The position numbers and the translations under genes were made by a program. From the NCBI GenBank assembly GCA_965240325.2, contig OZ251224.1, positions 3,968,001-4,032,000 of the forward strand: DNA of 64,000 bases, in the 5' to 3' direction. Numbering within the stretch: the first letter of the stretch is position 1; each line of letters starts with the position of its first letter. Positions 21,873 through 49,242 of the stretch are shown here, piece after piece. The DNA is from Rebecca billardiae RCC1528. Taxonomy: Eukaryota; Protista; Haptophyta. The notes beneath the pieces were generated by a model that worked only from the letters and a program-made list of their open reading frames with translations, searched no databases and was not told the origin of the DNA.

Positions 21873-21905
21873 CATATACATACATACATATATATATACA
21901 TATAC
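21814..21905. repeat. (TA)n/(TACATA)n microsatellite
   Basis: Directly visible. Confidence 0.9.
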
Positions 21906-22353
21906 GACTACATTATTTGAACATCATCAGCCTCACAGGCCAGTACTCTACGTACTAGACTCTACGTCTAACGTAAACGTAAATTACGTAAAACGAGGCC
22001 GCGAGGCGACCGTAAGTCATTAGTGAGTGCGAGTGATTATGAGTGTGAGCCGGGTGCTGGCGGCGGACGCGGGATCCGAATCACATATACTCACAGCAGT
22101 CACAGCGCAGGTTACACTAGTTAGTAACTAGTACATTATCATCATGCGTGACAATGCGACTTACGTGTCTGCCGGTCAGGCGGTCACTCCGCAGGCCAGG
22201 CTCATGCCGGCTCCCGCATCCGGACAGACCGATGAGTCCGACTCGGGCGGGAGACTCCGCTGCCGGACTGCAGACAGCCTGACTCGCGCACCTGCGCTCA
22301 GCCAGCACTTTTCTCACGTGGAATGCGCGTCCAAGCACTCGCTCAGCTTGTCG

Positions 22354-22770
22354 CTATGCGGCGTCGACAGCGTTGGGGCAAAACTGGCGGAGCTGCTTGA
22401 GCCACGCGTCACGTGCGAGTTCGTTCGCAAAGCGCAGCTTGAACTTGGCATCTTTCGTGCCCTTCGCACTGCGCACCATGATCACAAGCATATGACTGCT
22501 GGTCTTCTTCTCCTCCTTGGGCCGCAGCTGGACCACTTCCTGCAGCAGAATCTCGCGCCGCTTCTCCTCACCCGGCACAAAGTAGTAGAGCTTGCCCTCG
22601 TGTGGAGAGAGCTCCATCTGCTTCTCCTGGTAGCCTTTCCACGGCACGCTGCGCCGTCTCTTCTCCACAGGCTGCATCATCGCCGCCTTCTCCCGTGCCT
22701 CCTGCTCGCGCCGCTTCCGCTCCTCATCCGAGGCCTGCGCGTGCACGACACGGCCTCTGGCGCGCATCAT
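22354..22770 (-). CDS. Short PH-like domain protein, tandem paralog of the C-terminal part of the upstream IQ/PH gene
   Basis: RVVHAQ..PWKGYQEKQMEL..EGKLYY..KRREILL..FKLRF..ARDAWLKQLR..C aligns with the 23213-24763 product. Confidence 0.7.
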   Translation of the reverse strand: MMRARGRVVHAQASDEERKRREQEAREKAAMMQPVEKRRRSVPWKGYQEKQMELSPHEGKLYYFVPGEEKRREILLQEVVQLRPKEEKKTSSHMLVIMVRSAKGTKDAKFKLRFANELARDAWLKQLRQFCPNAVDAA

Positions 22771-23212
22771 GATGATGATCCCGGCGCGCGGGTAGTAATT
22801 CCCTAGTTACTGGGGCTGGGCGGGCCGGCGAGGAGCACAGCTGGTCAGTTGTCAAAGAGCTCAGCCTCTCACTAAGGTACCAACTATAACGGTTAACCAG
22901 CAAGTCATCACGCTCCTCATCCAATTCCACAGACCACACCCGGCGCAGCCACGGCCCATGTGCTAGTGACGCGTAGGCGCGGTGCCTCCACGCCGCAATC
23001 GACAGCATCTGCATTCAGCCTTCAGGCATCAGGCGTATCAGCGTGGCGCGGCGGCGCGGTCCCGCAGTGGCGCGACGCACGCAGGTGCCCCAGAGGCCCG
23101 AGCGACAAGTGGCCAGTGCGCTGTCGGCTGGGGTCGCGGCACGGCGCAATATGCTCTGCAGGGCGCTGCACGATGCCATGGGTTGGCCGAGGACGACGCC
23201 GCCCATGCGTGC

Positions 23213-24763
23213 TCACCGCGGCGGCGTCTGGCCGCCCGCGGGCGTCTGCCCGCCTGAGCGAGGCGTCTGCTTCCCCGAGCGCGTCGGGAACCAGCCTTTG
23301 GAGCGCGGCGCTCGCCCCGCCGAGTGTGGCGGCGTCTGCCCGCCCGCAGGCGTCTGCCCGCCCGAGCGCGGCGTCTGCCCGCCCGAGCGCCCCGCCCCCG
23401 GCAGGCCGAGCGTGCGCGGCGCGCGCGGCGGCGTCTGCCCGCCCGCGCGCGACGGCGGCTGCGAGTTGGCCGGCGTTGGCCCCGGGCTCTCACCCGAGTC
23501 GATCACGTTGTGGCACACGCGCCGCAGCCGCCTGAGCCACGTGTCGCGCGCGGCCTCGGTCTCGAAGCGCAGGGCGAACTTGCCGGCCTTCGAGCCCGCC
23601 GACTTGCGCACCTCGAGCGTGATCATGTGCTGTCCGCTCGCGCGCTCGAGCTCGGGCGTGAGGCCCACCACGTCTCGCAGCAGGATCTCTCTGCGCTTCT
23701 GCTGCGTCGGGTTCCAGTAGTACAGCTTGCCCTCGTCGGCCTGCAGGCTCATGCGCCGCTCCTGGTACCCGATCCACGGCGCGCTCCGCGCCTTCTTCCA
23801 CACGGGCATCTCCATCTCCGCGCTCTCTCGCGCGAGCGCCTCGCGCTGCAGCCGCTCGTCCTCGGCGACCTGCGCGTGCACGACGCGCGCCTCCGCCACC
23901 TTGCGCCGCTCGGCCACCTTGGCGCGGTACTGCCACCACGCGTACTGGATGCGCATGGCGGCTTTGGTCTGGCCCTTCGCCATCAGGTACACCAGCTTGC
24001 GCTTCGTCACCTCCTCGTCCACCTGCTTCCGCGCCTTGCGCCCGTGCCAGTGCGCCTGCACGATGTGCGCGGCAAACCCGCGCTGCCGCTCTCGCCTGCG
24101 GATGTACGCGAGCTGCGCGCGCCGGGCGCGAGGGCGGGGGCGGCGTGGCCCCGCGCGTGAGCGCGCGTGCGTGCGGTGTGCGCCCTCGCGCCGCCGCGCA
24201 CCGCGCGCGCACCTCGAGCTTCATCACCGCCTTCCGCTCCGCCGACGCGAAGAGGGTGATCACCTGGTACTGGCGCTTCGTCTCGCGCAGCCGCTTGCGC
24301 GCGAGCCACGCGCGCACGTGCTTCTGGATGAAGGTGGACTTCTCCTGCTGCACCTTGGCGCGGGTCGCGCTCGTGCGGTCGAGCATGCCCCGCGCGCGCG
24401 CCTGGATGCGGATCGCGTGCCGCTCGTTGATCACCTGGTTCACCTCGTCCTGGTACTCGCGCCACGCCTCCTGCGCACGCACGCGCGTACCGGGCGCCCA
24501 GCCACGCGGAGCGAGGGGGCAGGTGAGCACGTCGCTCGCGCCAGCTTCACACTCTCAGGCGGACCGCCTCGCCCCTGCGCGCCGAGCCGCGAATGCCAAG
24601 GCGCGCATGTGCGGTGCGCGCGCGCGTGTGCGCACACCCACAGTGTGCGCTCAAACTTGAGCACGCGCCCGATGTGCGGCGTGGCGCTCGGATTCTTGAG
24701 GTGTGCCGCGGGGTCGGGCTCGCCCTTCGCCTTGTAGTTGTCATCGTACTTCTTCTTCACCAT
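23213..24763 (-). CDS. IQ-motif (calmodulin-binding) and PH-like domain protein; exons 24763-24638, 24470-24213, 24112-23213
   Basis: IQ motifs AIRIQARARGMLDR, FIQKHVRAWLARK, IVQAHWHGRKARK, AAMRIQYAWWQYR; PH C-terminal helix LRFETEAARDTWLRRL; GGQTP repeats; canonical introns 24471-24637 and 24113-24212. Confidence 0.82.
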
Positions 24764-25422
24764 GGCGTGTCTCCGCCGAGTCCGCGCGAGCGCCCAGCCG
24801 CGGCAGGAGCAGTCTCGCAGTCGAACTCAAACAGGCGGCCACCCGGCAATGCGCCCGCCGCCGCCGGGAATGATTGTGGCCTCTCGTGACGAACGATGGC
24901 GGCCGGTGACGAGGGCCGAGTGCTTGGCTGGGCTGCAAGTCTGCCTGCTCATAGTCTTGCTGCCAACACTTGCTGCCCCTCTCGTTTCCACACGAGCAGC
25001 CGTACGTGGCCGACATGCTCTGTGAAAACGCGCACACTCGATCTGCTCGCGCTTCCTGCTCTCGCCGTCACAGGCCGCTCGCCGCCTCGTCCCGGCAGCC
25101 TGGCCAGCCGCCGCCGCCAGCGGGCCCGCCACACGTTGACACTGACGTAGCCTACCCTGACACCGCGAGCTCAGTCTCTGAGATGTAGGCACATGCGCAC
25201 AATGAGCGCGCCAAGCTGTGCCTCATACCAGCCCAGTACGGCCTCATGCGTCGCCAAAGTGGTGACCCCTTGAGAGTTGAGAGCTGCTTGCAACTGCCAT
25301 GCGGCCATGCTGACGGGGCCTCCCTGTTTTTTTCGCAGCGGGGACTGGGGAGCGACGGTTTCACTGGAGGCGCACGCCTCGACCTCCGCTTCGCGCGTGC
25401 CGCCGGGGCGGGCGGTCTCGCC

Positions 25423-27309
25423 ATGCGGTATGTGGAGGCGACAGCCCCGTCGGTGATCGACGAGGAGCTCTGCCGCGCGTGCATCCACCTGCTCCAGCCC
25501 AAGGAGCTCACGCCGAGCGGCACGATTGAGACGGAGGTCAACCGACAAAGCACGGTGACCAAGCAGCAGAACCTGCCGTTCAGCGAGGTGGAGTATCTGG
25601 TGTTCTCGTTCAAGAGTGCGCGCGCGCGCGTGGCGCGCGCGATCCCACGATCTCAGCCGTCCGCACCACTCGCACTTCGCGCCGAGCGGCCGCGCCTGCC
25701 CGCGGCTGATCCGGCGTGCGCACACGCGGCATCGCGACCGGGGCGTGCGCTGCGCTGCGTACGCCGCCAGACATCCTCAAGATCAACAACCTGGTGGGCT
25801 TCGACCGGCTGGTGCGGCTGTACCTGGACAACAACGTGATCGTGAAGATCGAAAACCTCGACCACCTCGTCAACCTCGAGTGGCTCGACCTCTCGTTCAA
25901 CAACATCGAGCGGATCGAGGGTCTCGACTCGCTCGTCAAGCTCGAGAGCCTCTCGCTCTTCAACAACCGGATCGAGGCGCTGGAGAACCTCGACGCGCTG
26001 GTGGGCTCGCTGCAGGTGCTCTCGATCGGGAACAACCGCCTCGCCGACCTCGAGCAGACCAAGGAGCTGCGCAAGTTCAAGCAGCTCCAGGCCGTCACGT
26101 TTGCGGGCAACCCGCTCGCCGCCAAGGACGACTACCGCGCGTACGTGCTCGCGCACCTCAACCACCTGCGCTACCTCGACTACCGGCTGGTGGACGAGGC
26201 GGAGGTGGCGCAGGCGGAGACGGACGGCTCGTTGCAGGAGCGTCTGCAGGAGATCCGCGCGGCCGAGGCGCAGGACGAGGAGAACCTCGAGGTCTCGCGC
26301 AAGCTGGCGGACAGGTCAGCGGCGCTGCACAACGCCCACCTCGGCGCCATCGACAACTTCTGGGGCAAGCTGGAGGCGGCGACGGCCGAGTCGACGGCCA
26401 AGGTGAGCGTGGTGGACCAGCTGAGCGAGCTGCACGCGAAGAAGCGGCCCGAGTTCGAGAGCAGGCTCGACGACTTCATCCAGCTCGCCACCACCCGGCT
26501 CAAGACCAAGCAGGAGGAGCACGCCCTGTACCTGGACGCGGCCGCCTCAATGCGCCAGGCGAACAACGCGGAGGCGCTCGAGCACATTGCGCGGTGCGCG
26601 CGCACGCCCCCGCCGCCGCGCGCGCGGGCGCGGCCCCGCGCGCTCACGCTCCGCGCGCCGCCCCTCCCCGCGCCGCAGCTTCAACGCCAAGGCGAAGGAG
26701 GTGCGCCGCCTCTTCGCCGCGGCCGAGGGCAAGGCGTACAACGCGGCGCAGGAGCAGCAGCGCAGCGACGCGCTCGTTGCGCTGCGCGAGGCCAACGAGC
26801 AGCTGTACGACTCTCTGATGGACCTGGAGATGATGGAGGTCGACCAGTTCCGCGCGGCGCTCGACGCGTTCGAGCTGCAGTACAACGCGCTGCACAACGC
26901 GAGCAAGGAGGCGATCAACTCGACGTTCGACGAGATGCGCACGCTCGCGACCGCGTGGACGGAGGAGGCGCAGGACTACGCGACGCAGCGGCACGACCTC
27001 TTCGTGTCCGAGGCGCAGAACGACTCGGACGAGCTCTCCGACGAGCTCAAGCAGGTGCTCAACGACAAGGAGGGCATGACCAACGCGATCACCGGCGAGC
27101 ACGAGTCGCGCATCGGCTTCCTCGACGCGACCGAGGACACGCTGGGCAAGGACGAGACACGCGCGTACAACAGCATCATCGACGGGCTGCGCGAGGGCGA
27201 GTACAGGCGCAACCGCGAGCGCGTCAACGAGATCAGCAAGCTCGTGCACGACACGAACAAGGACATGATCGAGGAGCTGCAGGCCGCTCTGGATGCGGAG
27301 GACAAGTAG
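25423..27309 (+). CDS. DRC3: Dynein regulatory complex subunit 3 (LRRC48); exons 25423-25615, 25771-26593, 26679-27309
   Basis: PSVIDEEL..L.FSFKNILKINNL..L.LDNN.I.KIENL..LVNLEWLDLSFNNI SDS22-type LRRs, LRRcap YR.YVLAHL..L.YLDYRL, coiled-coil C-terminus ending EYRRNRERVNEI. Confidence 0.92.
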
Positions 27310-27774
27310 GGCCGCGGAGTCTCCTGTCCTGCGGATGAGTAGCCACTGATCTGTCAGGCCGTCGTCGCGTAGGGTCCGAGTGGTCCGACAGGGGAGGTGA
27401 GCGGAGGCAGCGCTTGTCTTGACGAAACACGGTGGTTGGGGACGTTTCATTTTCAGTTTCCCGCCACCGAACCTAACGGCAAGCCCTGAACAGGTTGGCT
27501 TTGCTGAAACGGTGCGACACCATTCAGACCGGTAGGTAAAATCAGGCTGTGGTTGTGAACTTGAGACTCATTAGCACAGGCTGAAGGATAGTGATAGAAT
27601 CTTGTGAATCAGGTTGAAAGACCCAATCGGAACAGATGTGAAAGCTCATTGGTCGATCTCAAAAGGAAGTTTGTTTTCAGTAGGACCTTTCTTGTTCTCT
27701 TTCGCGTCTTCCCCCTTTTCCCGCGCCAAGAGGCGCCAAACGCCGTCTCGCGCGGCACCACGTGTGTCTCTCGC

Positions 27775-28911
27775 ATGATGACATCAAACTCCAGCCTGAC
27801 GCACGCCTCGATCGAGGTCCCCGTGAAGGGCGAGGACGCGATCGTGAAAGGCCTGGTCAACCTCGGTGACCACCGCGTCCAATACTTCTCCGTCTTCGAC
27901 GGCCACGGCGGACAAGCCGCCTCCCGCATGTGCGCAGACCATATGGACGAGTACCTCGCTGCGTCGTACGGCGAGCTCGCGCGGCGCGGCGGCAGCACGC
28001 AGGAGGACGAGCTGCTCGCGCAAGCGTTCACGCGCGCGTTCGATCTTGCCGATAAGGACATCGCTGCGCATGCTTCCAAACGCGCGGGCACCACCGCCAC
28101 CTGCGTCGCTGTGAATGAGCGGACGCACGGCATTGTCGTCGCCAACGTGGGCGACAGCAGCGCGTACCTCTTCAGTCCGGACGGACGTATGACGCAGCTG
28201 ACTGCTGACCATCGCGTCGGGCGCTGCGGCGAAGCAGAGACCAAGCGCCTGCTCGAAGGCGGCGCCGACATACGCCAAGCGACTGGCGTCTCCGGCAAGT
28301 CTGTCGGCCCGCCGCGCGTGTATCCCGGCGGGCTGTGCGTCACGCGCTCGATTGGCGACAAGGACTCGTCCAGCGCGGTGACTTCCGAGCCGAGCGTCGC
28401 GCGCTTCACGTACCCAGAAGAGGGCGGTACCATCATCGTCGCATCCGACGGCGTGTGGGACTTCATCAAGGAGGAGGACGTGATGCGGCTCGTGCGCACG
28501 TCGCACCACATGGGAGTTGTCTGGCTGGCCGAGTCGCTGATTGCAAACGTGTGCCAGTACAACGACAAGATCGACGACGTTTCGCTCGTGTGCATCTCCC
28601 TCGGCGGTGGCGCGCCGGGTGTGCGGAGCCCACCCCGTGCCGCGGTGCGCCGCATCTCGCGCGCGGTCACTCTGCCGCGCTCGTTGCGCCTGGGCAAGGC
28701 CACGAGCACGTCGGCAGGCAACAGGTCGCCGCCGACATCGTCGAGCGACTCGGACGACACTTCCGTGTCGTTTGGTGGTCACAGCTCTTCTGTCGGGTCG
28801 ACGTCCTTGACGACAAGCCCGGCGAGCAGCGTCGCGAGCCACCTCGACGTGTCTTTCGCCACCAAGGCCATGCGTGCTCTCTTCACCCGAGGCCCTCGCG
28901 CAGGCGCGTGA
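27775..28911 (+). CDS. PP2C/PPM-family Ser/Thr protein phosphatase
   Basis: FSVFDGHGG, GTTA, VANVGDS, LTADH, GLCVTRSIGD, IIVASDGVWD and DDVS motifs. Confidence 0.93.
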   Translation: MMTSNSSLTHASIEVPVKGEDAIVKGLVNLGDHRVQYFSVFDGHGGQAASRMCADHMDEYLAASYGELARRGGSTQEDELLAQAFTRAFDLADKDIAAHASKRAGTTATCVAVNERTHGIVVANVGDSSAYLFSPDGRMTQLTADHRVGRCGEAETKRLLEGGADIRQATGVSGKSVGPPRVYPGGLCVTRSIGDKDSSSAVTSEPSVARFTYPEEGGTIIVASDGVWDFIKEEDVMRLVRTSHHMGVVWLAESLIANVCQYNDKIDDVSLVCISLGGGAPGVRSPPRAAVRRISRAVTLPRSLRLGKATSTSAGNRSPPTSSSDSDDTSVSFGGHSSSVGSTSLTTSPASSVASHLDVSFATKAMRALFTRGPRAGA

Positions 28912-30230
28912 GTGAGACTCGTCGCCGTGCGGGCTCCCACGATTCCCGGACCGGGCGAGATCGCCGTTGAAACGTCCACGGCTGCTGCCAAGTGCCAGCT
29001 GGGTCACTCCTTAGCCTGGGCCTTCGGATGAGGCTGCTCGATCTGTTGACTAGTCTCACACTACTACACTAATTTAATTCTCGGTACACTAGCCACCACT
29101 GCCACCAGTCTCCGCCGCTGCCTGGTAGTGACCGGGTTGGCCGAGTGAGTAGCCTAGTAGGCAGTATCATACTGTATAGTGCCGCACTCATTTTGACACG
29201 CCGACACGGCAGCCTACGGCCCTACGGACTCACTACGGCTAGTCGCGCCCGGCCGCCCGACTCGGGCGGCCGAGTAGCTACATGTAATGAGTACGACTAC
29301 AGCAGCTATTTAGCGATATAGGCAGCTAAGTCAGAATTATTATTCGGTCATAGTTCGGCTTCGCCTCCTTCGGCGCGGCGGGTCTGCCCTGCAGCCGAGC
29401 GAGAGTCATCGGAGTATGTCGTATGCAATGAGTATGATGCCGCCGCACTATAGTAAGTAGAATTTATGCTGCTTAGCTACTGAGTAGCTATCCGATTCGT
29501 CCGGCCCGGCGGCTCCGCGGGCGGTTCCGGCGGCAGATGGTACTAGATTGGCAGGCGGCGCGCCGCAGGCGGCCCCCGGCCCCGGGGCCGGGACCGGGTT
29601 CGTTCGCGGACGGCTCGGCGGCGGGCCCGGCGGCGCGGGCGGGCAGCGGACAATCGGGCGGATCGGCTGCACGACGGGCACGACTCATCAGGCCACACGA
29701 CTGCTCACGACTCACTGAATCTGATGACTCGACGACTCACTCCGACACGAGCGCTAGACGACACGACTCACTACGAGATATATATATTAGGCTTCCGACG
29801 GACACTACGAGCCTCCGCCTCGGTCCTCCGCCGCTGCCCGCTTCGGCTCAGACTCCGCGCGCCTCGCCCGGGCACGGCGCGGCGGCCGGGCACGGTGCCT
29901 CGTTCCGTTTACCGTTACGACGTCGTCCCGCGGCTGCTCACTACAGCTTAGCAGTCGCGTCGTTCGTTTAGTCGGTTTAGTGATGTAATTATGTCTGCTA
30001 CGTGTAAACTGTAAGTTCTATATCTATAATAACGACTCAAATATAACGAGTTTTGCGCGCAGGCGCCGCCAGCCGGGCGGTCGGCCGCTGATCGATCCGC
30101 GCTGCGGATCGCCGCCGGCGTCCGAGGGTCGAAGAACCATCAGTCGGACCGCGCGCGGGCCCCGGGTCATAATGACATAATCAGCGCAGGCCATGTCGTT
30201 ATATGTGAGCCTCGTCGTCAGACGATGTCA

Positions 30231-31469
30231 TCATCGCAGGGGCTCGAAGCTCACGCCTGCGAGCGTGCGACCCTCGACCAGCCTTTTGGTCGCTCCGAGT
30301 TCTGTCAGCGTGAGCCATCGGTGGCGGTAGCTGCCTCGCCGCGGGCAGAACTCGAAGAGGCGCACGCCGGCCACGTCCGGCCGCGGCGTGACCCGCTCGG
30401 CGATGAGGCTGAAGTTTGCCTCGCCGCGGCCGCCTGTGCGCAGCACAAAGGACTCGAAGGCGTGCCCACCGTCCGGCGCGGCTGCGACTTGGCTCGCCTC
30501 GGCCGGCTCGAGCGACTCGGCCCCATTCCAGCGAATGGGGCACGCGACGGACGAGGTGGTGATCACGCGCAAGGGCGCGCCTCCAAACGAGTCTGCAGAC
30601 GTGAGCGCGTTGGCGTGGAAGTGGCCGCAGATGACGACGCGCGGGCGCATGGCGGCAGTGGCGAGCACGTCTGCCAGCCGCGCGCGCTCGGCGGAGGGCC
30701 AGTTGGCCCAGCCTGCGGGCTCGTCCGGCGCGCCGACGAAGGGGGGGACGTGGGTGAGCAGCACCACGCCGCTCGTATTTGTGCTGCGCACCGTGCGCAG
30801 CTCTTCCGCCAGCCACGCCAGCTGCGCCTCGCGCGCCGCGCGTGCGCCATCCCCTGGCGCATCTCTGAGCAGCAGCGAGTTGAAGCTGAGGAAGCGCACG
30901 CCCTCCACGCTGAACGAGGAGCGGTCGGCGCCCCAGCGCCGCTCGTACGCGTCGAGGGCCGCAGGCGTGGGCGTGTCGCCGATGTCGTGGTTTCCTGGGG
31001 TGACGCCGTGCATGGGTACACGCAGCCGGCTGAGCGAGCGCTGCACTTCAGCCGCCTGCCGCGCGCCCACATCGCCGTGCCCAGCGAGCGCGCCGTGGTT
31101 CGCCGCCGTGGGATCCCAATTCTGCATGTCGCCGGAGAGGAACGCGACGCGAGGGGCAAGACGGTTCAGCTCGCGGACGGCCAAGTCCAAGTTCGCCCGC
31201 TCCGCTGACCAGTCGAGCGCCACGGCGGGATCGGAGCTCGCGCCGTTCACGATGCCAAACTGCGGGTCTGCGAGCTGCGCGGCGAAGAAGCAGCTCGTCG
31301 CGCCGACCGGGAACGGTGGTGTCGGCAGCATGCGGCCTACGGCGAGGGCCTCCCCCTGCGCGACGATCGCCACGCTGGCGGCCAGGATGAAGAGGGCCGC
31401 GAGCACGCTGAACGCGGCCATCGTCTGGAAGTAGTCCAGCGCCGCCATCCTTGCATGGAGCATCAGCAT
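30231..31469 (-). CDS. CPPED1: CPPED1-like calcineurin-type metallophosphoesterase with N-terminal hydrophobic segment
   Basis: QLADPQFG, SGDM, PGNHDIG, THVPPF, CGHFHAN, VITTSSV motifs; start could be 31448 or 31421. Confidence 0.85.
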   Translation of the reverse strand: MLMLHARMAALDYFQTMAAFSVLAALFILAASVAIVAQGEALAVGRMLPTPPFPVGATSCFFAAQLADPQFGIVNGASSDPAVALDWSAERANLDLAVRELNRLAPRVAFLSGDMQNWDPTAANHGALAGHGDVGARQAAEVQRSLSRLRVPMHGVTPGNHDIGDTPTPAALDAYERRWGADRSSFSVEGVRFLSFNSLLLRDAPGDGARAAREAQLAWLAEELRTVRSTNTSGVVLLTHVPPFVGAPDEPAGWANWPSAERARLADVLATAAMRPRVVICGHFHANALTSADSFGGAPLRVITTSSVACPIRWNGAESLEPAEASQVAAAPDGGHAFESFVLRTGGRGEANFSLIAERVTPRPDVAGVRLFEFCPRRGSYRHRWLTLTELGATKRLVEGRTLAGVSFEPLR

Positions 31470-32319
31470 TCAAGCTCCACCACTCTGCCACCAGCACGAG
31501 TTTCTCCAAAACTTCGCGGCTTCGCCGTCGCACCAAACTTGATTCCTGATGTGGAGTGTGGTGGCACTGTGCTAAGTGCTTGTGCCGAGTTGCTCATGAT
31601 CAGCGAGGGCGCCCGCCCGCCCGGGGCCCGAGTCGTCTTCGTCTGATCTGATTCATTTCGTCGTCCAGCAGGGTATGGGGGTACAGTAGACTTTGCGTCC
31701 GTCTTGTCGCGTCTCAACTCTCAACTCACGACCCAGAGTCGTGTCTCGTCATCGGCGTCGGCTGGCGAGCGCGCTCGCGATCGTCGGCCATCGGGCATCG
31801 GCGCCGCGACGATGCGCGCTGCTGCCTGCTACCGCCGCCACCCAAGATGTTACAGCTGTTAGGTCTCTCCGTAGCTAGATTCTAAACGTCTTTTGTCTAG
31901 CGTAGTCTCTGTCAATATACATCTCTCATGCTGGCTCTAAGATACATATGACCGCGTTCCGCGGTCCTTTTCCGTAGAACCAACGCAGTTGGGGGCCCGC
32001 GGCGCAGTGGTTGAGAATGAGACCGTGACGTCGTCAATCCGCACGGTCTGGCGTCTGCCTGGCAGTCAGACAGGCAGCCGCACCGTCTCGGAGAGTGAGT
32101 GAGAGTCAGACCCGTCCGTCGGACTCGCGGCGCGTGAATGGGCGCGCCGACGGCCAAGGGTGGCCGGCACGGGACACCAGCGGACGGGCCGCGCGGGGAA
32201 GCGGGGCGGCGCGCGCGCAGGGCGAGAGGCGCGGACGGGCCGCGCGGGGAAGCGGGGCGGCGCGCGTGCAGGGCGAGAGGCGCCGCGCGGCGCGGGCCGG
32301 CGCGTGCGCGCGCGCGCGC

Positions 32320-34291: not shown

Positions 34292-35928
34292 TCATGTTGT
34301 GTCGTCGTCGAGCTCCTTTTCGATGAAGACGCGCTCGAGTCTCTCCAGCTTCTCGTGCAGCGCCTCGTTCTCGCGCTTCACGTCGTCGTAGGAGCGCTGG
34401 AGCAGGTCATTGGAGATGCGCAGGTGCGCATTCTGCTGCCGCAGCTGCAGCAACTCGCGCTCGAGCTCGGCGAGAGCGGCCGCGGACTGCGCCGTCGGCA
34501 GCTGCGCGCTGTGCGCGTGCGCGCCCGGGCCCATGGCGGGCTGCATCGGCGGCGGCGCGGCGTGCAGCGCGCCGAGCTGCTGCGTGAGCGCCATGTTATG
34601 CGCGCGCAGGCCGTGCACCTCCTCGCGCAGGCTCTTCAGCGACGCGGCCATCCCCGACGCCTGGCTCAGCTGCACCACAGGCCGGTTCTGGATCTTCTTG
34701 GCCGCGTGCAGGTAGTTGAGCGTGTGCGTCGACTCGTCTGCGGACAGGGCGGCGGGCGAGACGCAGCCGATCATCATCGCGATGCTGCTGCCGCCGAGCG
34801 AGTCGGCGAGCAGCTTGGTCAGCTTCGAGTCGCGGTAGGGCACGTGCCCCGCCGGCCGCCCCGACTCGAAATGCGCCGAGAGTGCCGCGATCACCTGGCC
34901 GAGCACCAGCAGCGAGCGGTTGATGTGAGCGGTCTCGCGCGCCTGCCCGCCGACTGAGCCGGACTGCTGCAGCCGCTCCGAGCCCGCCAGGTCGACGAAG
35001 GAGAGGCGGCCGTGCGTCTCCACGGCGTGCGCCACGCCGGGCGCGCCCGCGTGCTCGTCGAGCGCGATCTCCTCCCTCGACGTGAGCTGCACCTGCATGA
35101 TCGAGTGCGAGCGCGACGAGTCCTTGTTCAGCTGGTGCGAGCCGACCTGCGGCGCAGTCCACAGCCGTCACGCGCGGCGGGGCGCCGGAGCGCGCGGCGC
35201 GCGCGCGCGCGCGGCGTCGGCAGGGGTGTCAGACTGCCAGCCCGCGACCCGGCGGCCGGACACGCGCGCGGCGCCGCGGCCGACAGCCGCGCGCGCACCG
35301 TGCGGTTCTTCGTGCCCTCCCTGAAGACCATCATGAGCTCGTCGACCGTCTCGCAGTCGACCACCAGCAGCCCCTCGACGAAGAAGCCCTGCTGCGCGTT
35401 CCAGCGGATGGGCAGGCCGGTCGACGCGGGGTTGAGGAGGTCGTTGATCTGCTCGTTGTAGATCTCCAGGTACGACGCGGACACCGCGTACGACACGCCC
35501 GCCCGGCCGGACCTGTGCGCGTCGAGCGCGTTGAAGAGGTAGCGCACAGCGCGCGGGATGATGCCGTCGCCCGCGCTGCCCTCCGCGGAGGCGGCGCGGT
35601 CGGCGATGCCCTCGGGGCCGGACATGGTGAAGGTCTTGCCCGACCCCGTCTGCCCGTACGCGAAGACCGTGGCCGCGTACCCCTGCAGCGCCGCGTCGAG
35701 CAGCTGGCGCATGTCGGTGCGCTCAAACACGTGCTGCTGGTTGGACCCGCCCAGCGCCGCGTCAAAGGTGAGCTGCCGCGGCCCCACCTGCACGGTGCGG
35801 TCGTCCAGGCAGCGCACAGACTCGCTGTCACCACGCGCGCGCTCCATCTCGCTCGGCGGCCGCACGCGCGCGACCACGGTGATGCCGGAGGCTCTTCCTG
35901 GCGGACCGTTGCTCATGGCGGCCGCCAT
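34292..35928 (-). CDS. Kinesin motor protein, KIF12-like; exons 35928-35299, 35146-34292
   Basis: VARVRP, FAYGQTGSGKT, YLEIYNE, NKDSSRSH (restored by intron 35147-35298), FVDLAGSE, HVPYRDSKLTKLLADSLGG; PIRWN..GFFVE resembles KIF12. Confidence 0.93.
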
Positions 35929-36118
35929 CGTGTCGCTGAGCACACTCAGCGACCGCGCGACGATTCGATGCTTTCGGCTTTCCTTTGTCACTGTATCGAA
36001 GGGACATTACACAGTCAAGGCACTCGGTGTATCGGTCAGTGGTTTGAGGTTGGGTGAGGGTGGTGGTTGGTTGGGGGCTGGCCAGGGTAGGGCTGGAGGC
36101 TTCGGCCGCCAGTCTGAT

Positions 36119-36152
36119 CACCCGGAGCCCGTTATAAAGGGGAATTTAAAAA
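36119..36152. mobile_element. Solo left end of CAC-ended MITE family C
   Basis: CACCCGGAGCCCGTTATAAAGGGGAATTTAAAAA is identical to 9802-9835. Confidence 0.7.
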
Positions 36153-36503
36153 AACAGCACGGTCTACTACTGGTAGCTACTTTAGCTAGTAGTACAATTA
36201 TAAGCACGACTACGACTGGATCTTGACGATGACCAACGGGGCGGTCAGACGTGACCAAGGCTGTTGATTCAGATATTGATCAGACTTCAGACCATTGTCC
36301 AGCCTATACCAGTAGCATTCACACATGATATATGTGATGATGATAGTAACGGTCATCCCGGCGGCGCGGTGAGGGCGGCGCGTCGTCGTCCGGAGTCGCC
36401 TCCGTGCCCTCCGTCGCCTCGCGCGCCGCGCGTTCACGAATCACGATCAGTGCGGAGCCCTGCAGACGCATGGTTCACAGTCTGGCTTCGTCAGGGCCTG
36501 CTG

Positions 36504-39500
36504 TCATGAGAGGGTCGGCGGGGAAGCCAGGCCGTCGTCCACTGCCGCGGGGCTCACCAGGCCGTAGTGGGCGGGCATGCGCTCCCTGCGCCTCGGCGGC
36601 GAGTCTGGGTCGGAGTCGATGACGTCCGACTCCGAGGCGGTGGCCCCCACCATCGAGCCGCTCGGGTGCATCGCCTTGATCGCAGCCCACGAGCCAGATG
36701 CGGCGAGGCCGGAGCGCTGCCGCATCCGCTGAGACCACGTGAGCTCGGCGCCAGAGGCCGCCAGCCCGGACTGCGCGCGCCGCCGCCGCGGCGCAGGCTG
36801 TGCAGGCTCCGACGCCGCCGGCGCCGCCGCGAGCGCCGCGGAGCGCTGCTCGGCAAGCGCCGCGCGCTTCGCCGCGAGCGTCTTCAGCACCGCCTTCTGC
36901 ACCGCGGGCAGGTAGCCGTGCACCGTCTCGTTGAAGCCCTCGACCGTCGCGAGCTCGACCGCGCGCAGCAAGTGCGCGTCCTCCAGCTCCGTGCGCGCGC
37001 GCGCGTACACGCAGTGGAACGCGTCGATCGAGGAGATGGTCAGGTTGAGCGCGCGCTCGTCCGACCCGACAGCCAGCACGTGCACGTCGTCGAGCGAGCC
37101 GCCGATCGCGCGCCACGCGTACAGCTCCATCGCCGCCCAGAGCCGGTCGACCAGCGTCGGCCCCCACAGCACGAGCAGGCTGTGCGCGCTCGCGAGGTGC
37201 AGCGGCATGCGCGCCACGTGCGCGCTCGGCTCGAGCGTCGCGTCCGCGCTGAGCTCGTCCAGCCACACGCACGGAGGCCGGCCGTGCTCGGCCGCAAAGT
37301 CGCGCGCCCAGCGCGAGAGCGCGAGCCGCTTCTCGTCCGCGTCGTCGTGATGCGAGTGCACCACGTACGCGTCCACGTGCGCCGCGCCCGCGGCCGCGCC
37401 TCCGGGCGAGGCGGCGGCGTTGAGCCAGCTCGGTCTCCCCGGGCGGCGCAGGCTGGAGCGCCGGCCGGGGCGCGCGCCCAGCATTGGCGCGCTGTTCTTG
37501 CGCTGGGCCACGGGGCTGCCAGCGCACGGGCTGGCGCAGCCGCTCCCCGCCGACCTCCAGCGGCTGGGCACGGCCTCCGCCTTGCGCGCGGGCAGCTCCG
37601 GCGAGGGCACGAGGGCGGAGGGGCGCCGCCTGCCACCGGGCAGCTCGGGCGACGACAGAGTCATCCACCCGGGCAGCGCGCTCGGTCGCTCCTCGGACGG
37701 GCGGCCGCTGCCGCTGCCGCGGCCATGGCCACGCACAGCGGCATGCTCCTCGGACGGGCGGCCGCTGCAGGATGGGCGGCCGCTGCCACCCCAGCTTGGG
37801 TCGCTGGGCGCGGTAGCCTGCGGCTCTGAGGAGCCGGCACCACTGCCACAGCTCGCGGCACTGCTCCGCGCCACCCTGCGCTCCTCGGACGCGCGGCCGG
37901 AGCCGCGCGATGAGCCCAGGCGGAAGCAGCCGCGCTCCTCCGAGGGCCGGCCAGAGCTGAGCGTGCGCCGGCCTGCGCGGCTGCCCGCCTGCTGCTTGGC
38001 GCTGGCCTGAGCGCCGGGCGTGCCCAAGGCCGCAGCCGAGCCGGCTTCGCTGAGACAGCCAAGGCGGCGGGGCAGTGGGGACGTGCCTGCGCCCGGCGGA
38101 GGGCCCGGCGTCTCGCCACTCGCCTCCTCAGCGCGCGCGCTCAGCGCACGCTCCGCGCTCACGACGCTGCGCGCGCCAGTGGCCGGAGGCGTCGTTGATG
38201 AGCCCGACGGCTGTGCGTCCCGAGCGGCCAGGACCATCGGCTGGCTGAGCAGCGAGAGCGAGCACACGGGCGAAGCCACCGCCTCATGCACCGCGGTGGC
38301 CTGCGACGCACTAGCGCCGCCCCGCGCGCGGCTCGCGCCGCTCGACGGGCTGCCGCCACCTGCGCCTGCGCCCGCGCCGTCCGCCTCCGCCTCCGCCTCC
38401 GCCGCCTCCTCCTCCTCCTCCTCGCTGCATCCCTCCTCCGTCACCTCCACCGCATCGACGCGCGTACTGAGCCGCCGCCTGCTGGCCGCGGGCGTGCCGA
38501 GCCCGCGCGCGGCCGTCGCGCCGAAGAGCGAGTGCAGCGTGCGCGCCTCGAGCGGCACGGCGCGCATCGAGCCGACGCCCACGGCGCACAGACGCTTGAG
38601 CTCGAGCGGCGACAGCGCGTCGGCGCGCAGGCTGCGCGCGCTGGCGGCCGCGCCGCCCGCGCCCTGCGCGCTGACGAGCGCCGCGAGGGAGGCGTGCGCG
38701 CCGCGCGCGTGCGAGCTGTGCAGCAGCGCCGACACCAGCCGACGGCGAACGCGCGCCGATACCATCACGAGCGCAGGCGGGAGCGTGAGCGCGAGCAGGC
38801 CGAGCCGCGCGCCCAGCAGCCACGCGCGCCCCTCGAAGGAGCCGGTGGCCGCGCCGACGCCCAGCGCCGCGCCCTCGAGCAGCGCCACGCCGGCCGCCTC
38901 GAGCCCGACGGACGCGGCGCCCCCCTCCATCAGCCGGTACGAGCGGCCCCAGTGCCGCGCGAGCGCGCAGGCCCAGCCGAGAGCTGCGCACGCGTGCGCG
39001 GCGGCAGCGCCGACGCCGAGCGCACAGATCGCCACCTCGGCCGGCCGCGCCAGCGGCTCGCTCGCCGAGCTGCCCAGCTCGGCGGACAGCTTGGCGACGG
39101 CCGCGCCCGCGGCGGCGCCGCCGAGCGCGAGCGCCACCAGCCGCATGTGCACGAGGTGCGCCTGCACCGCCGGCGCGGCGAGCGTGGCGAGGACAGAGCA
39201 GAGAGTGCCCAGCGTCGCGAGCAGCCCGGCGCGCAGCGCGTGCGCATCGTCGGCGGCCTCGACGGCGTGCTCTGCCAGCCCGAGGCTTCGCGCGGAGAGC
39301 GCGCGGTCGACGCAGAAGGCGACGAGCAGCAGAGGCACCGCCGCCGCCGCGCAGCCGCTCGCGCCGGCCGCCGCCGCGCCCGGCTGCCGGCTCGCCTCTG
39401 CGCGCGCGTTCTCGAGCAGAGCGACGATCTCATCGAGACTCATCGCGCCGTGCTTGCCCGTGAGCGCGCCGACGCGCCTGCCGGCCTGCAGCGGAGACGC

Positions 39501-41417
39501 GGTCAAGCTCGCGCCGCCGCCGCCCTTCCCGGGCGCGGGGTTGCCGCCCACGTCCAGGGGGTTGACCCCGGCCGCGCTGACGAGGCTGACGACGGAGTTG
39601 GTGCGCGACACGCCGTTGGAGGCGCGGCTGCTCGCGCGAGACATCCGGTTCGAGCCGCCGTTCGGAGCAGCGCCCACGTCGCGCGCGTGGAGCATCTGCC
39701 AGCGCTCTGTCAACGGCGCCGGCGACACCGCGCCTCCCACCGCGCTCGCGGACCACGCTGGCGGCTCGTTCGGATCCTGCGGCTGCAGCTGCGCGCCCGC
39801 CTCCGCCGTCGCCAGCACCACGTCGTGGTAGACCGACCTGCAGCGCGCGGAAGGAAGGAAGGACGGGAGAGGAGGGCATGCGACGGCGCAGCTGAGCGTG
39901 CGCGTGTCGGGACGGGGCGCACGGCGGGGCGCCGGCGCCCGTCGCGTGCCGCGCCCGTCGCGTGGCGGGTGCGCGCGCGCGGCGCGCACCGGAGCAGCGA
40001 GAGCACTTCGCTCACGTTGATGGTCTGCTGCCCGGACAGGTACAGCCGGTGGCACGCGCCGTTGATGCGCACCGTCTCGGCCGGCGGGAAGAGCTCGCGC
40101 GTGCGCGGCAGCGCCGTCATCAGCGCCACCACGTCGTACGGCTTGACGTACCCGTTGAGGAACTCCTGAATCGCCGAGCTCTCGACCAGCTGCGCGAGGC
40201 CCTCCTGCTCGAACTCGTCCCCGGCGACGCCGCAGAAGGTCTCAAAGTACCACTGCTTGGTGCAGCGCGCGGGCAGCTCGCCTCTGCACAGCCGCTGCCA
40301 CAGCCCCTCGAGCCCGAGGAACTGCGCGCTGGAGAGGTACGCCATCACCTGCGCACGCGACGCGGCAGACGCGGCACACGGCACCCAGCAGGCACGGGCG
40401 CGCGGCGGGCCGGCCGCGCAGGTCGGCAAGTGAGCGCGAGGGCGAGGGCGAGCGCGCGCGCGCCTGTCCGCCTGACTGTCTGCCCTCCCTCGGTCCGAAG
40501 CAGCCCCAGACCAACAGGCCTGCCTGCGTACGCAGCGGCGGCGGGCGGTGGCGCGCGCCGTGCGCTCGCGCGCACCGGGCAGTACGTGCGCTCGGCAAAG
40601 CTGCGCGCCAGCTGCATCGGCAGCATCGGCACCGCGTGCCGGCTCGTGACGCTGAGCGGCACGCCGTGCGCGAAGCAAAAGTCGTACACGGCCTGCGCCG
40701 CCTCCACGTCAAAGCCGTTGTTCACGGACGAATCCGCGCGCCAGCCGTGCGTCGCGGAGGCGTCGCGCTCGAGCCCAGCCTGCACGGCCACGTGGCGAAC
40801 CCTGCTGCGCACGAGTGCCGCCTCCTCGGCGATCGCGTCCGCAAAGTCGCGCAGGGAGCTGATGAGCACAACCGTCAGGCCCGCTGGCGGCGCGGCTCGC
40901 AGCGTGGAGAGCAGCAGCTCGTGGCCACGGACGAGCCGCCCGGCATCGACGGATTCGTACCCATCGAGGCGATACTCGTGCGGCTGCGGTTCCAGCGCGT
41001 GCCCCTGCGAGCCCACGCCCACGGGCACGTCGACCCCAATATGGTCGAGCACGCACAGCGCCAGCCGAGCGCGGGCCTCGGCCTGACCGCCACCGTTGCA
41101 CACGACCGCGCGCAGAACGACCTCGCCCTGCTTGTGCAGCACGCCAAGGACCAGCAGTGCTTTGATATCGTCCGGATCCGGCCCCTGCAGATCGGCGCGG
41201 TGGCGCGCAGCGCGGGACGTGAGCGCGAGTGCGTTGGCACGCCGCCGCGCCGTGCACGCGCACAGACGGCCGCACATACCGGGTCGGTGACGAGCAGGAT
41301 GTCCGGCGGGATGCGCTTGCGCGCGCCGAGCGTCCACGGGCGGGGCCGGCCCTTCACCCAACTGCCATCACCAGGCGGCGGGTCGCCACCCGCCGGGCTG
41401 ACGTGCGCGCGCCCCAT
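36504..41417 (-). CDS. 1479-aa fusion: nucleoside-hydrolase-fold (HopQ1/XopQ-like) domain + ~6 TM helices + C-terminal TIR-like domain; exons 41417-41280, 41184-40576, 40348-39990, 39837-36504
   Basis: Three GT-AG introns give a 4440-nt in-frame CDS. NH motifs LLVTDP/GPDPDD, VPVGVG, NN.FD.EAA..VY, PYD. TIR-like DAYVVHSHHDD..VWLD..LLVLWGPTLVDRLWAAMEL. Confidence 0.82.
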
Positions 41418-47973: not shown

Positions 47974-49242
47974 TCACGGCAGCCGCCTCCGAGCGTTGGC
48001 AGCGCGTCGCCGGGGCCGCTGCATCGCGACGCGCTTCTGGTCGACGGTGACGGCGTTCACGTTGTCAGTGCCGCTGGCATCGACGCTTGGGGTGAAAGCC
48101 AGGCGGCCACTGGAGGCCGCTGCGACGGAGCTCTCGTCGCTGAGGGGCCCAGCTGGCTCGCTGGCGTGCGCCAGCGGTGCTGACACCCGTTGGGCGCTGC
48201 GAATGGCAGCCCCAGCCGCGGCCCCCGCCGGCGCGCTCGGGGAGCGCCGTCGCTTCGAGGCGCCCACCGCGCGCACCTGCTCCCCTCGCTGCCGCGTGCT
48301 GGTGCGCGGCGTGTTGTGCGCGAAGGGCGAGTTGGCGACGCGGCGCATTGAGCCGTCGAACCCGCGGTCCCAGCCAGTGTGTGGCGCATTGCGCTCGCAC
48401 TGCGCCGCGATCGGCGCGACGTCGTACTCGGCGAGGTCGACGGGTATCTCCGCCTCCACGCGCACGCCATCATCTAGGCACGGCGCGGCACGGATCGCCC
48501 TGAATTCGACTCCGCGCGCGCCCGCCTCGCGGCACGCGCGCGCAAACTCGGGGTCGTGGTGGTCCGAGGGTCGGACGCCGTGGCGCACGTCCGCTCGCTG
48601 TACGACGAAGAGCACCGTCGCGCGCTCGCCCTGGAGCGCGAGCTCGCCCAGCTCGCGCACGTGCCTCGCTGCGCGCTCGCTGACAGAATCCGGAAAGTAG
48701 CCCCAGCCGTCCTCGTACACCATGTGGCAGTTCTTGACCTCGACCCAGTGCCGCGCGGCGTGCGAGCTAGTGCCCGGCTCGATCAGGCAGAAATCACAGC
48801 GCCCGCCCTCCGGCAGGCTCATCTCAGCGTGCACCTCGGCATGTGCGCTCAAGCCCGGTAGTGCACGCGCCTCGAGCACCGCGGCCGCGATGGCGTTTGG
48901 GCGTTGCGTGTTCGTCCCGCAGAGCACAGCGGCACCGCTCTCCAGTGGGGTGTGCTCGAGGAGCTCCCACGTGTACCGGCACCTGCGCTTGGGGTTTGCG
49001 CTGGGCAGCAGGTAGCAGCGCGCGCCCGGCACCACAAATGCCTCCATGCGCCCTGGGTTGACGCAGTGCGCCTCTACCGCCTCGCCCGAGGACTCGAGCA
49101 CCATGTCGGCGAGGAAGCGGTCGCGCCGCGCGCAGAATGTTGCTGCCACCAGCGGGCAGGGCCACGGCACCGTGAGGGCGAGGCGCTCGAGCATCCTCGG
49201 CGGGCGGCCTGAGGCACGGGGCATTTCAGACTGGCAGATCAT
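47974..49242 (-). CDS. sfsA: SfsA-family DNA/RNA nuclease (OB fold + PD-(D/E)xK) with C-terminal extension
   Basis: RRDRFLAD, AHCVNPGRM, NPKRR..YTWEL, NTQRPN, RCDF, WVEVKN, FPDSVSERAARHVREL, LFVVQR, DPEFA motifs; start may be 49224 or 49194. Confidence 0.92.
   Translation of the reverse strand: MICQSEMPRASGRPPRMLERLALTVPWPCPLVAATFCARRDRFLADMVLESSGEAVEAHCVNPGRMEAFVVPGARCYLLPSANPKRRCRYTWELLEHTPLESGAAVLCGTNTQRPNAIAAAVLEARALPGLSAHAEVHAEMSLPEGGRCDFCLIEPGTSSHAARHWVEVKNCHMVYEDGWGYFPDSVSERAARHVRELGELALQGERATVLFVVQRADVRHGVRPSDHHDPEFARACREAGARGVEFRAIRAAPCLDDGVRVEAEIPVDLAEYDVAPIAAQCERNAPHTGWDRGFDGSMRRVANSPFAHNTPRTSTRQRGEQVRAVGASKRRRSPSAPAGAAAGAAIRSAQRVSAPLAHASEPAGPLSDESSVAAASSGRLAFTPSVDASGTDNVNAVTVDQKRVAMQRPRRRAANARRRLP

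Follow-up and report, generated by a model that had tools for sequence, protein, structure and literature searches.

We analysed a stretch of 64,000 nucleotides from the haptophyte Rebecca billardiae RCC1528 (contig OZ251224.1, positions 3,968,001 to 4,032,000 of the forward strand, GenBank assembly GCA_965240325.2). This whole stretch is hereafter called the window, and all coordinates refer to it. Positions 41417-36504 on the minus strand are occupied by a single gene with four exons, whose product is an integral membrane protein with ~1300-1479 residues. The protein joins an N-terminal nucleoside-hydrolase (NH) domain resembling the bacterial effectors XopQ and HopQ1, a block of six membrane helices and a divergent C-terminal member of the TIR/HET superfamily. 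The gene is a member of a large multigene family of pavlovophytes (Pavlovophyceae), present in the databases as hypothetical proteins.

A preliminary description of the locus had proposed that four exons splice in frame to encode 1479 amino acids. Re-reading the minus strand directly from the sequence gave the same coordinates, with four exons and three introns joined in frame and an exon sum of 4440 nt (1479 codons plus the stop). Exon 1 (41417-41280, 46 codons) starts with the ATG at 41417-41415, ends with LLVTDP and provides the first Asp of the DxxxDxDD motif; its G+C frequency at third codon positions (GC3) is 0.89. Intron 1 (41279-41185, 95 nt, GTATGT...CTGCAG) is in phase 0. Exon 2 (41184-40576, 203 codons) starts with GPDPDD and encodes the core of the nucleoside-hydrolase fold. 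It is followed by intron 2 (40575-40349, 227 nt, GTGCGC...GCGCAG, phase 0), which has no in-frame stops. Exon 3 (40348-39990, 119 codons and 2 nt) encodes the C-terminal part of the NH fold, including KPYD, and intron 3 (39989-39838, 152 nt, GTGCGC...CTGCAG, phase 2) splits a codon for Arg. The large exon 4 (39837-36504, 1110 codons and the stop TGA at 36506-36504) encodes the end of the NH domain, a pre-membrane stretch, the six-helix block, a linker, the TIR-like domain and a tail. In-frame ATGs upstream of exon 1 reach 41615, in an in-frame stretch with a GC3 of 0.65, and we infer that translation starts at 41417.

The region has a GC content of 72-80%, and its flanks of 47-56%. Long open reading frames (ORFs) are common at such GC (75-80% here), and the strand opposite the gene itself holds overlapping ORFs of 400-627 aa, so that ORF length is weak evidence. 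The in-frame GC3 was 0.86-1.00 over the folded domains, and the three introns had flat GC values across codon positions. From base composition, the probability of 1110 stop-free codons is ~2e-6. Periodicity and homology together ruled out that the long ORF is an artefact of high GC.

The junctions were confirmed by comparison with relatives, for which exons were searched separately or joined with an X at each junction. Relatives aligned to the X-joined query crossed all three junctions without a gap. They read RTxCP-VMxYLAxAQFLGL at the second junction and VLxLLR-xxYHEVVLAT at the third, where the split codon of the query is a conserved Arg. The removal of intron 1 is required, because homologs read ITDP-GPDPDD gap-free at the first junction. 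The motif TDPGPDPDD is made only across this intron, between the TDP of exon 1 and the GPDPDD of exon 2, as the preliminary description had stated. Exons 2 and 3 matched positions 65-254 and 277-372 of the XopQ profile, in this order. A profile made from 12 full-length relatives, with the query left out, placed four colinear pieces on one strand of the six-frame translation. In relatives, one mRNA carries all three parts: MMETSP transcripts of Pavlova gyrans bear complete three-part ORFs, and in a cDNA-like JGI contig (L001) the ORF takes up 3219 of 3288 nt.

The NH domain (41300-39801, minus strand, approximately residues 40-381 of 1479) extends over exons 1-4, and its DxxxDxDD motif (41288-41280 and 41184-41167) is split by intron 1. 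IU_nuc_hydro (PF01156) is the sole domain that Pfam recognises in the query: exon 2 scored 34.4 bits, for a cut-off of 34.2. Relatives reached up to 48 bits with this model, and the match is precomputed for most family members. The NH profile of the family itself gave 318.9 bits for exon 2 and 169.8 bits for exon 3. When exons 2 and 3 were searched against the PDB, the only solved relatives found by sequence were structures of XopQ (4kl0, 4p5f and 7jlu; E 4e-8 for exon 2). Exon 2 and the NH domain of a close homolog (P0047) are 62.7% identical; this NH domain matched Xanthomonas XopQ with an E-value of 2.5e-26 and 30-33% identity over 92% of its length, and its named non-algal matches were Xanthomonas XopQ. 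No canonical nucleoside hydrolase was among the solved or database relatives found. In a joint alignment, T-D-P-G-P-D-P-D-D fell column by column on D116/D120/D122/D123 of XopQ, and both proteins had the NN..D block and the Tyr-Asp pair. The Ca-binding Asp cluster, NN..D and YD are invariant or nearly so across the family. The NCBIfam equivalog of XopQ (NF041355, cut-off 500) was not reached by exon 2 (43.3 bits) or exon 3 (20.7 bits). By sequence, the NH domain is nearer to XopQ/HopQ1 than to canonical nucleoside hydrolases. The HopQ1/XopQ-like identity that had been proposed for it is borne out by the DxxxDxDD motif and by XopQ being the only solved relative found.

HopQ1-like proteins (HLPs) constitute an NH group of their own, which includes an algal clade, and are defined by DxxxDxDD in place of the canonical motif DxDxxxDD (PMC6019455). 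Our domain has both the fold and the non-canonical motif, which at the sequence level makes it an HLP, and the gene product most likely falls within the algal clade of the group. The algal HLPs of heterokonts and haptophytes carry the same motif, and our protein is also of haptophyte lineage, but Piechocki et al. 2018 (PMC6019455) treated HLPs as NH domains only, with no word on TIR, membrane-spanning segments or domain architecture, whereas ours is part of a fusion. The resemblance to XopQ and HopQ1 of Xanthomonas, Pseudomonas syringae and Ralstonia covers the NH fold, TDPxxDPDD and NN..D, and in XopQ as in the algal protein Tyr-Asp replaces the canonical His-Asp. In contrast to these effectors, the algal protein lacks an N-terminal region for secretion or 14-3-3 binding, is eukaryotic and intron-bearing, and is fused to the membrane block and the TIR-like domain. 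A 2026 preprint reported that XopQ hydrolyses the TIR product 2'cADPR to ADP-ribose (ADPR), that this activity needs an Asp of the motif (D120N), that XopQ and HopQ1 do not cleave standard nucleosides, and that ADPR is bound in the pocket of XopQ in PDB 4p5f (10.64898/2026.06.15.732069).

The membrane block (39437-38709, minus strand) includes a leading amphipathic helix and a trailing Arg-rich helix (38756-38709). Helices 1-3 lie at 39437-39282, 39248-39177 and 39164-39072, and helices 4-6 at 39047-38955, 38942-38847 and 38825-38760. The hydrophobic part spans ~39365-38748. The query alone gave five clear Kyte-Doolittle peaks at a threshold of 1.6, and five segments passed this threshold in most relatives too; helix 5 of the query is a weaker segment with two Glu. 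Hydropathy averaged over 17 aligned family members showed six peaks, and AlphaFold2 (AF2) modelled six long helices from a 45-sequence alignment (pLDDT 83.7, pTM 0.77), which agrees with the figure of about six given in the preliminary description. A Foldseek search with the six-helix model found no meaningful fold match in the PDB (best E 1.3). Homology of the block was visible only with a profile and a shuffle control, since plain phmmer searches of the block, both linkers and the tail against the relatives gave no matches. Against the family profile made without the query, the block scored 16.1 bits, while 200 shuffles gave -26.2 +/- 4.0. It is thus a true family-specific domain.

Lysine and arginine (K+R) cluster in three places: ahead of helix 1, in the segment from helix 4 to helix 5, and behind helix 6. 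Averaged over the family, K+R was 9.6 on these segments, which would be cytosolic, and 5.0 on the alternate loops. No signal peptide or N-terminal hydrophobic stretch was found (maximum Kyte-Doolittle score of -0.05 in exon 1). Given the six helices, the positive-inside charges and the lack of an N-terminal hydrophobic stretch, the protein would have both termini inside, so that the NH and TIR-like domains would both face the cytosol. This is the placement that the preliminary description had suggested.

The C-terminal TIR/HET-like domain lies at 37379-36882 on the minus strand (residues ~1189-1354). A search of 1.84 billion cluster representatives with the C-terminal 190 residues gave 1400 relatives at E <= 0.001, and at least 13 of the best 150 also carry the N-terminal domain. 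The AF2 model of the domain (pLDDT 94.8, pTM 0.90) shows strands and helices in the order of TIR domains. At least 45 of the top 50 Foldseek matches were TIR domains (RPS4, RUN1, SPARTA TIR-APAZ, AbTir, SARM1, Roq1 and TLRs), with E-values of 6e-4 to 1.4e-2 and probabilities of 0.97-1.00, a structural match that the preliminary description had anticipated. Some sequence evidence points the same way. The family profile matched the TIR domains of TLR2/15 (E 0.0068) and SIGIRR (E 0.043). The profile alignment set LLvLaGP...RLWCvvEL onto VLFVLSPSFVNSCWCQYEL, and RLWAAMEL onto WCQYEL of the TLR2/15 TIR domain. Among 83 relatives, 18 had a weak match to TIR_2 (best E 1.5e-5) and 15 a weak, below-threshold match to HET (PF06985, best E 0.0029). 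A separate Pfam scan of ten closer TIR-like relatives gave no matches, and searching the single TIR-like sequence against PDB sequences gave matches at chance level only. Three relatives from Diacronema lutheri (P0003, P0154 and P0156) are named "TIR domain-containing protein" in UniProt; two of them have the membrane block and one the NH domain.

Glu1273 of RLWAAMEL (codon 37127-37125, minus strand) occupies the WxxxE position of TIR domains, whose Glu we take to be the catalytic one of SARM1 and plant TIRs. It is kept in 61 of the 83 relatives, and it is nearly invariant (at least 90%) in the NH-bearing subfamily. The first half of the domain has invariant residues of its own (D, H, D, W, P, W, D, C and D). 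TIR NADases (RUN1/RPS4/Roq1, SARM1, AbTir and SPARTA TIR-APAZ) share with it the order of strands and helices and the WxxxE Glu of helix C; unlike them, the algal domain has extra C-terminal helices, and identity to them is only 8-18%. The W-I-D..C..Q and R-x-W...E blocks of HET resemble VWLD..C.D and RLWC..E of the family. HET and the algal family both occur in expanded gene families (PMC12881547), but HET proteins are soluble and often have NACHT or WD40 parts, whereas the algal protein has the membrane block and the NH domain. The domain is a divergent member of the TIR/HET superfamily that stands between TIR and fungal HET, and not a canonical TIR. The earlier assignment to TIR therefore stands for the fold and for the WxxxE Glu, and has to be amended for the type, which is of the divergent TIR/HET kind, with no Pfam TIR match for the query's own sequence.

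A disordered, low-complexity linker rich in Ala, Ser, Gly, Arg and Pro (38636-37407, minus strand, 410 codons) precedes this domain. From helix 6 to the TIR-like domain there are ~455 residues in this protein, versus 70-200 in relatives. Residues ~515-715 of exon 4 (~38294-37692) have no codon bias and no GC3 periodicity, and in this respect are intron-like. The frame of the gene has no stop in this stretch and the other two frames have two each, which would occur with a probability of ~0.09 if it were non-coding. We consider it unlikely that these ~200 codons hide an in-frame intron, which would shorten the protein and leave its architecture unchanged. Within the non-periodic stretch, four imperfect direct DNA repeats (37963-37686) encode motifs of the type GRPSEE[R/H]; their start-to-start spacings (54, 57, 135 and 192 nt) are all multiples of 3, which likewise speaks against an intron. 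The protein ends with a tail rich in Ala, Ser, Pro and Arg (36836-36507, minus strand, 110 codons) that has no detectable relatives. When the whole of exon 4 was searched against a set of 5.8 billion proteins, none of 8000 candidates scored, probably because Ala-rich words dominated.

Of the 298 proteins fetched, all three parts are present in 25, the membrane block together with the TIR-like domain in 31, and the NH domain alone in 87. The relatives are hypothetical proteins of D. lutheri and Pavlovales sp. CCMP2436, transcripts of P. gyrans and JGI contigs. At least 15 D. lutheri paralogs (KFE25_*) and several in Pavlovales sp. CCMP2436 are 30-63% identical to the query, whose maximum identity to family members is 63% in the NH domain and 49% in the TIR-like domain. 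These values rule out D. lutheri and Pavlovales sp. CCMP2436 as the source of the window and point to another, presumably pavlovophyte, alga. The three-part architecture proposed in the preliminary description is real, being present in 25 of the fetched relatives. The protein is no isolated oddity, as it belongs to a large pavlovophyte family. The parts are of known kinds and their combination is undescribed, as the preliminary description had supposed: full-text literature searches returned no description of a fusion of NH, membrane and TIR parts, and neither the XopQ preprint nor PMC6019455 mentions a fusion to TIR or membrane segments.

Several relatives have peculiarities of their own. Three of them are encoded on one contig of 493,744 nt (P0047, P0165 and P0172), and two further pairs also share contigs (P0188/P0189 and P0181/P0185). 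Such sharing, seen in Pavlovales sp. CCMP2436 and D. lutheri, may reflect local clustering of the genes. The D. lutheri protein KAG8460936.1 (P0001, 1085 aa) lacks an equivalent of residues 31-115 of exon 2, likely a wrongly called intron in the public annotation. In a protein of Pavlovales sp. CCMP2436 (P0161, 1450 aa) the NH domain begins only at residue 601, following either a long N-terminal extension or a fused gene model.

TIR domains make immune signals, and haptophytes are ecologically important algae that are heavily infected by viruses. Tentatively, and with somewhat less than even confidence, we read the protein as a membrane-anchored unit in which the TIR-like domain makes an ADP-ribose-derived signal from NAD+ and the XopQ-like domain trims or ends it. 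The membrane block would anchor the protein and probably oligomerise it. The TIR-like domain would probably become active on clustering in the membrane, and would then cleave NAD+ to give the ADP-ribose-derived signal. Within the same chain, the XopQ-like domain would hydrolyse a ribosyl bond of this product or of a close relative. This hydrolysis might end the signal and set its threshold, as XopQ does with 2'cADPR, or it might convert the signal to its final form. The scheme supposes that the fusion of the domains reflects their functional coupling, and it is made more plausible by the reported hydrolysis of 2'cADPR by XopQ (10.64898/2026.06.15.732069). The large size and the divergence of the family point to a role in conflict (immunity, virus defence or self/non-self recognition) and not in housekeeping. 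The sensor or decoy immune receptor that the preliminary description had also considered found no specific support: the active site of the NH domain keeps the residues expected of an enzyme, and there are no NLR or LRR parts.

Two known proteins offer partial analogies. SARM1 combines, on one chain, a domain that senses a metabolite with a TIR NADase, but its non-TIR parts are unrelated to those of the algal protein. CD38 is a single membrane protein that both makes and hydrolyses cyclic ADP-ribose (cADPR), with one active site and a different fold.

Some observations weigh against a signal maker coupled to its own hydrolase. The TM-scores of the Foldseek matches to TIR domains are low (0.34-0.53), and the query's own sequence matches neither the TIR nor the HET model of Pfam. 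HET is regarded as related to TIR and has no established biochemistry (PMC12881547). In the NH domain, the position of XopQ Tyr279 is Val in the algal family. This Tyr is reported to be important in XopQ, and because of the replacement the substrate may differ from 2'cADPR. The 31 relatives that have the block and the TIR-like domain, with NH undetected, include some truncated fragments; since these two parts occur without it, the NH domain is not obligatory for the module. Finally, exact look-ups of the 1063-aa and 246-aa ATG-start products found no transcript of this gene on record, and a 28-nt pattern from exon 2 had no match in JGI metagenome contigs.

The same parts could work in another order. 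The NH domain might bind an ADP-ribose-type or nucleoside ligand and so unleash the TIR-like domain, with depletion of NAD+ and death or arrest of the cell as the outcome, in the manner of the ARM part of SARM1 or the SLOG part of Thoeris ThsA, and the membrane block could then be a second effector. We hold this to be unlikely, although not negligible. The ADPR in the pocket of XopQ (PDB 4p5f) shows that such a ligand can be bound, an expanded and divergent family suits a defence role, and relatives with the block and the TIR-like domain alone would make the NH domain an exchangeable input module. However, the near-invariant Asp cluster, NN..D and YD are common to the catalytically active XopQ and are expected of an enzyme.

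It is decidedly improbable that the parts are functionally unrelated, i.e., that the protein is a membrane-anchored hydrolase of nucleoside or NAD salvage whose TIR/HET-like domain serves for interaction or as a scaffold and makes no signal. The motif is of the non-canonical HopQ1 type, canonical nucleoside hydrolases are missing among the relatives found, and XopQ and HopQ1 themselves leave standard nucleosides uncleaved (10.64898/2026.06.15.732069). At least 15 divergent paralogs per genome would also be unusual for a salvage enzyme. That Pfam sees IU_nuc_hydro only is in keeping with salvage, as is the use of animal TIRs as adaptors in TLR pathways (10.64898/2026.04.20.719644). The Glu is absent from 22 of the 83 relatives, which fits a scaffold, but it is nearly invariant where the NH domain is present.

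If only five helices spanned the membrane, the NH and TIR-like domains would lie in different compartments and the protein could signal from outside to inside like a Toll-like receptor. The five segments that pass the threshold of 1.6 in the query and most relatives, and the two Glu in helix 5 of the query, suggest such a count, but the six family-averaged peaks and the six AF2 helices contradict it. The K+R values (9.6 vs 5.0) fit both termini inside, and no signal peptide precedes the N-terminal part of 500 residues. Receptors of the Toll-like type have a signal peptide, an outside sensor and a single pass, none of which the algal protein has, and we regard this arrangement as very improbable. 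Least credible of all is an erroneous gene model joining two genes (NH; membrane block and TIR) because stops are rare at 77% GC: long chance ORFs are common here, residues ~515-715 of exon 4 lack coding periodicity and look-ups and the DNA pattern scan found no transcript, but the two genes would have to part between the NH domain and the membrane block, in a stretch of strong coding signal through which homologs, including complete ORFs on transcripts, continue uninterrupted, and there is no in-frame stop anywhere and the linker repeats are spaced in multiples of 3.

Should the protein be a membrane-anchored maker and trimmer of an ADP-ribose-derived signal, a broader proposition can be made, which we consider doubtful at present: pavlovophytes would carry a self-contained, membrane-bound device in which one and the same ADP-ribose-derived signal is made by a TIR-like synthase and hydrolysed by a XopQ-type enzyme, and XopQ-type enzymes that destroy signals would be old components of TIR signalling on the host side. 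Bacterial plant pathogens would in that case have taken over this activity, by copying or acquisition, and would not have invented it as effectors. The fusion is independent evidence, of the "Rosetta-stone" kind, that XopQ-type and TIR activities belong together, and it carries the link between XopQ and TIR into eukaryotes of a lineage far removed from land plants. It provides a testable system for the switching-off of a TIR signal from within, for the products of divergent TIR/HET domains and for the origin of an effector activity. It further directs attention to an immune-like family of haptophyte genes that is unexplored.

The neighbouring genes in the window encode a kinesin, a PP2C, an LRR protein, an MFS transporter, an SfsA-like protein and a cyclic-nucleotide (cNMP)-binding protein. 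The profile of full-length relatives found no second copy of the gene in the six-frame translation of the 64 kb, and the single copy and the ordinary neighbours rule out paralogs or a gene cluster within the window. The first exon of the kinesin motor (35128-35991, minus strand) lies directly downstream; it belongs to a separate gene, since a spacer of 56% GC (36000-36500) lies between them. The SfsA family, to which a 422-aa ORF (47974-49242, minus strand) belongs by its SfsA and SfsA_N domains, is mostly known from bacteria; the context here is of algal nuclear type. A 1921-aa ORF on the plus strand (15707-21472), in DNA of 79-85% GC, overlaps an antisense ORF of 1498 aa (16174-20670, minus strand). 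The 1921-aa ORF has no Pfam match; the alternatives are a very large gene of low complexity and a chance ORF driven by GC. An exact look-up of the ORF product of one neighbouring gene was not on record. Two Logan contigs (L002 and L003, from runs ERR14847148 and ERR14847151) start and finish in sequence identical to the window (region 21880-31972), and each encodes, without any difference, the 412-aa Metallophos-like ORF found there. The same or a near-identical organism has thus been sequenced independently.

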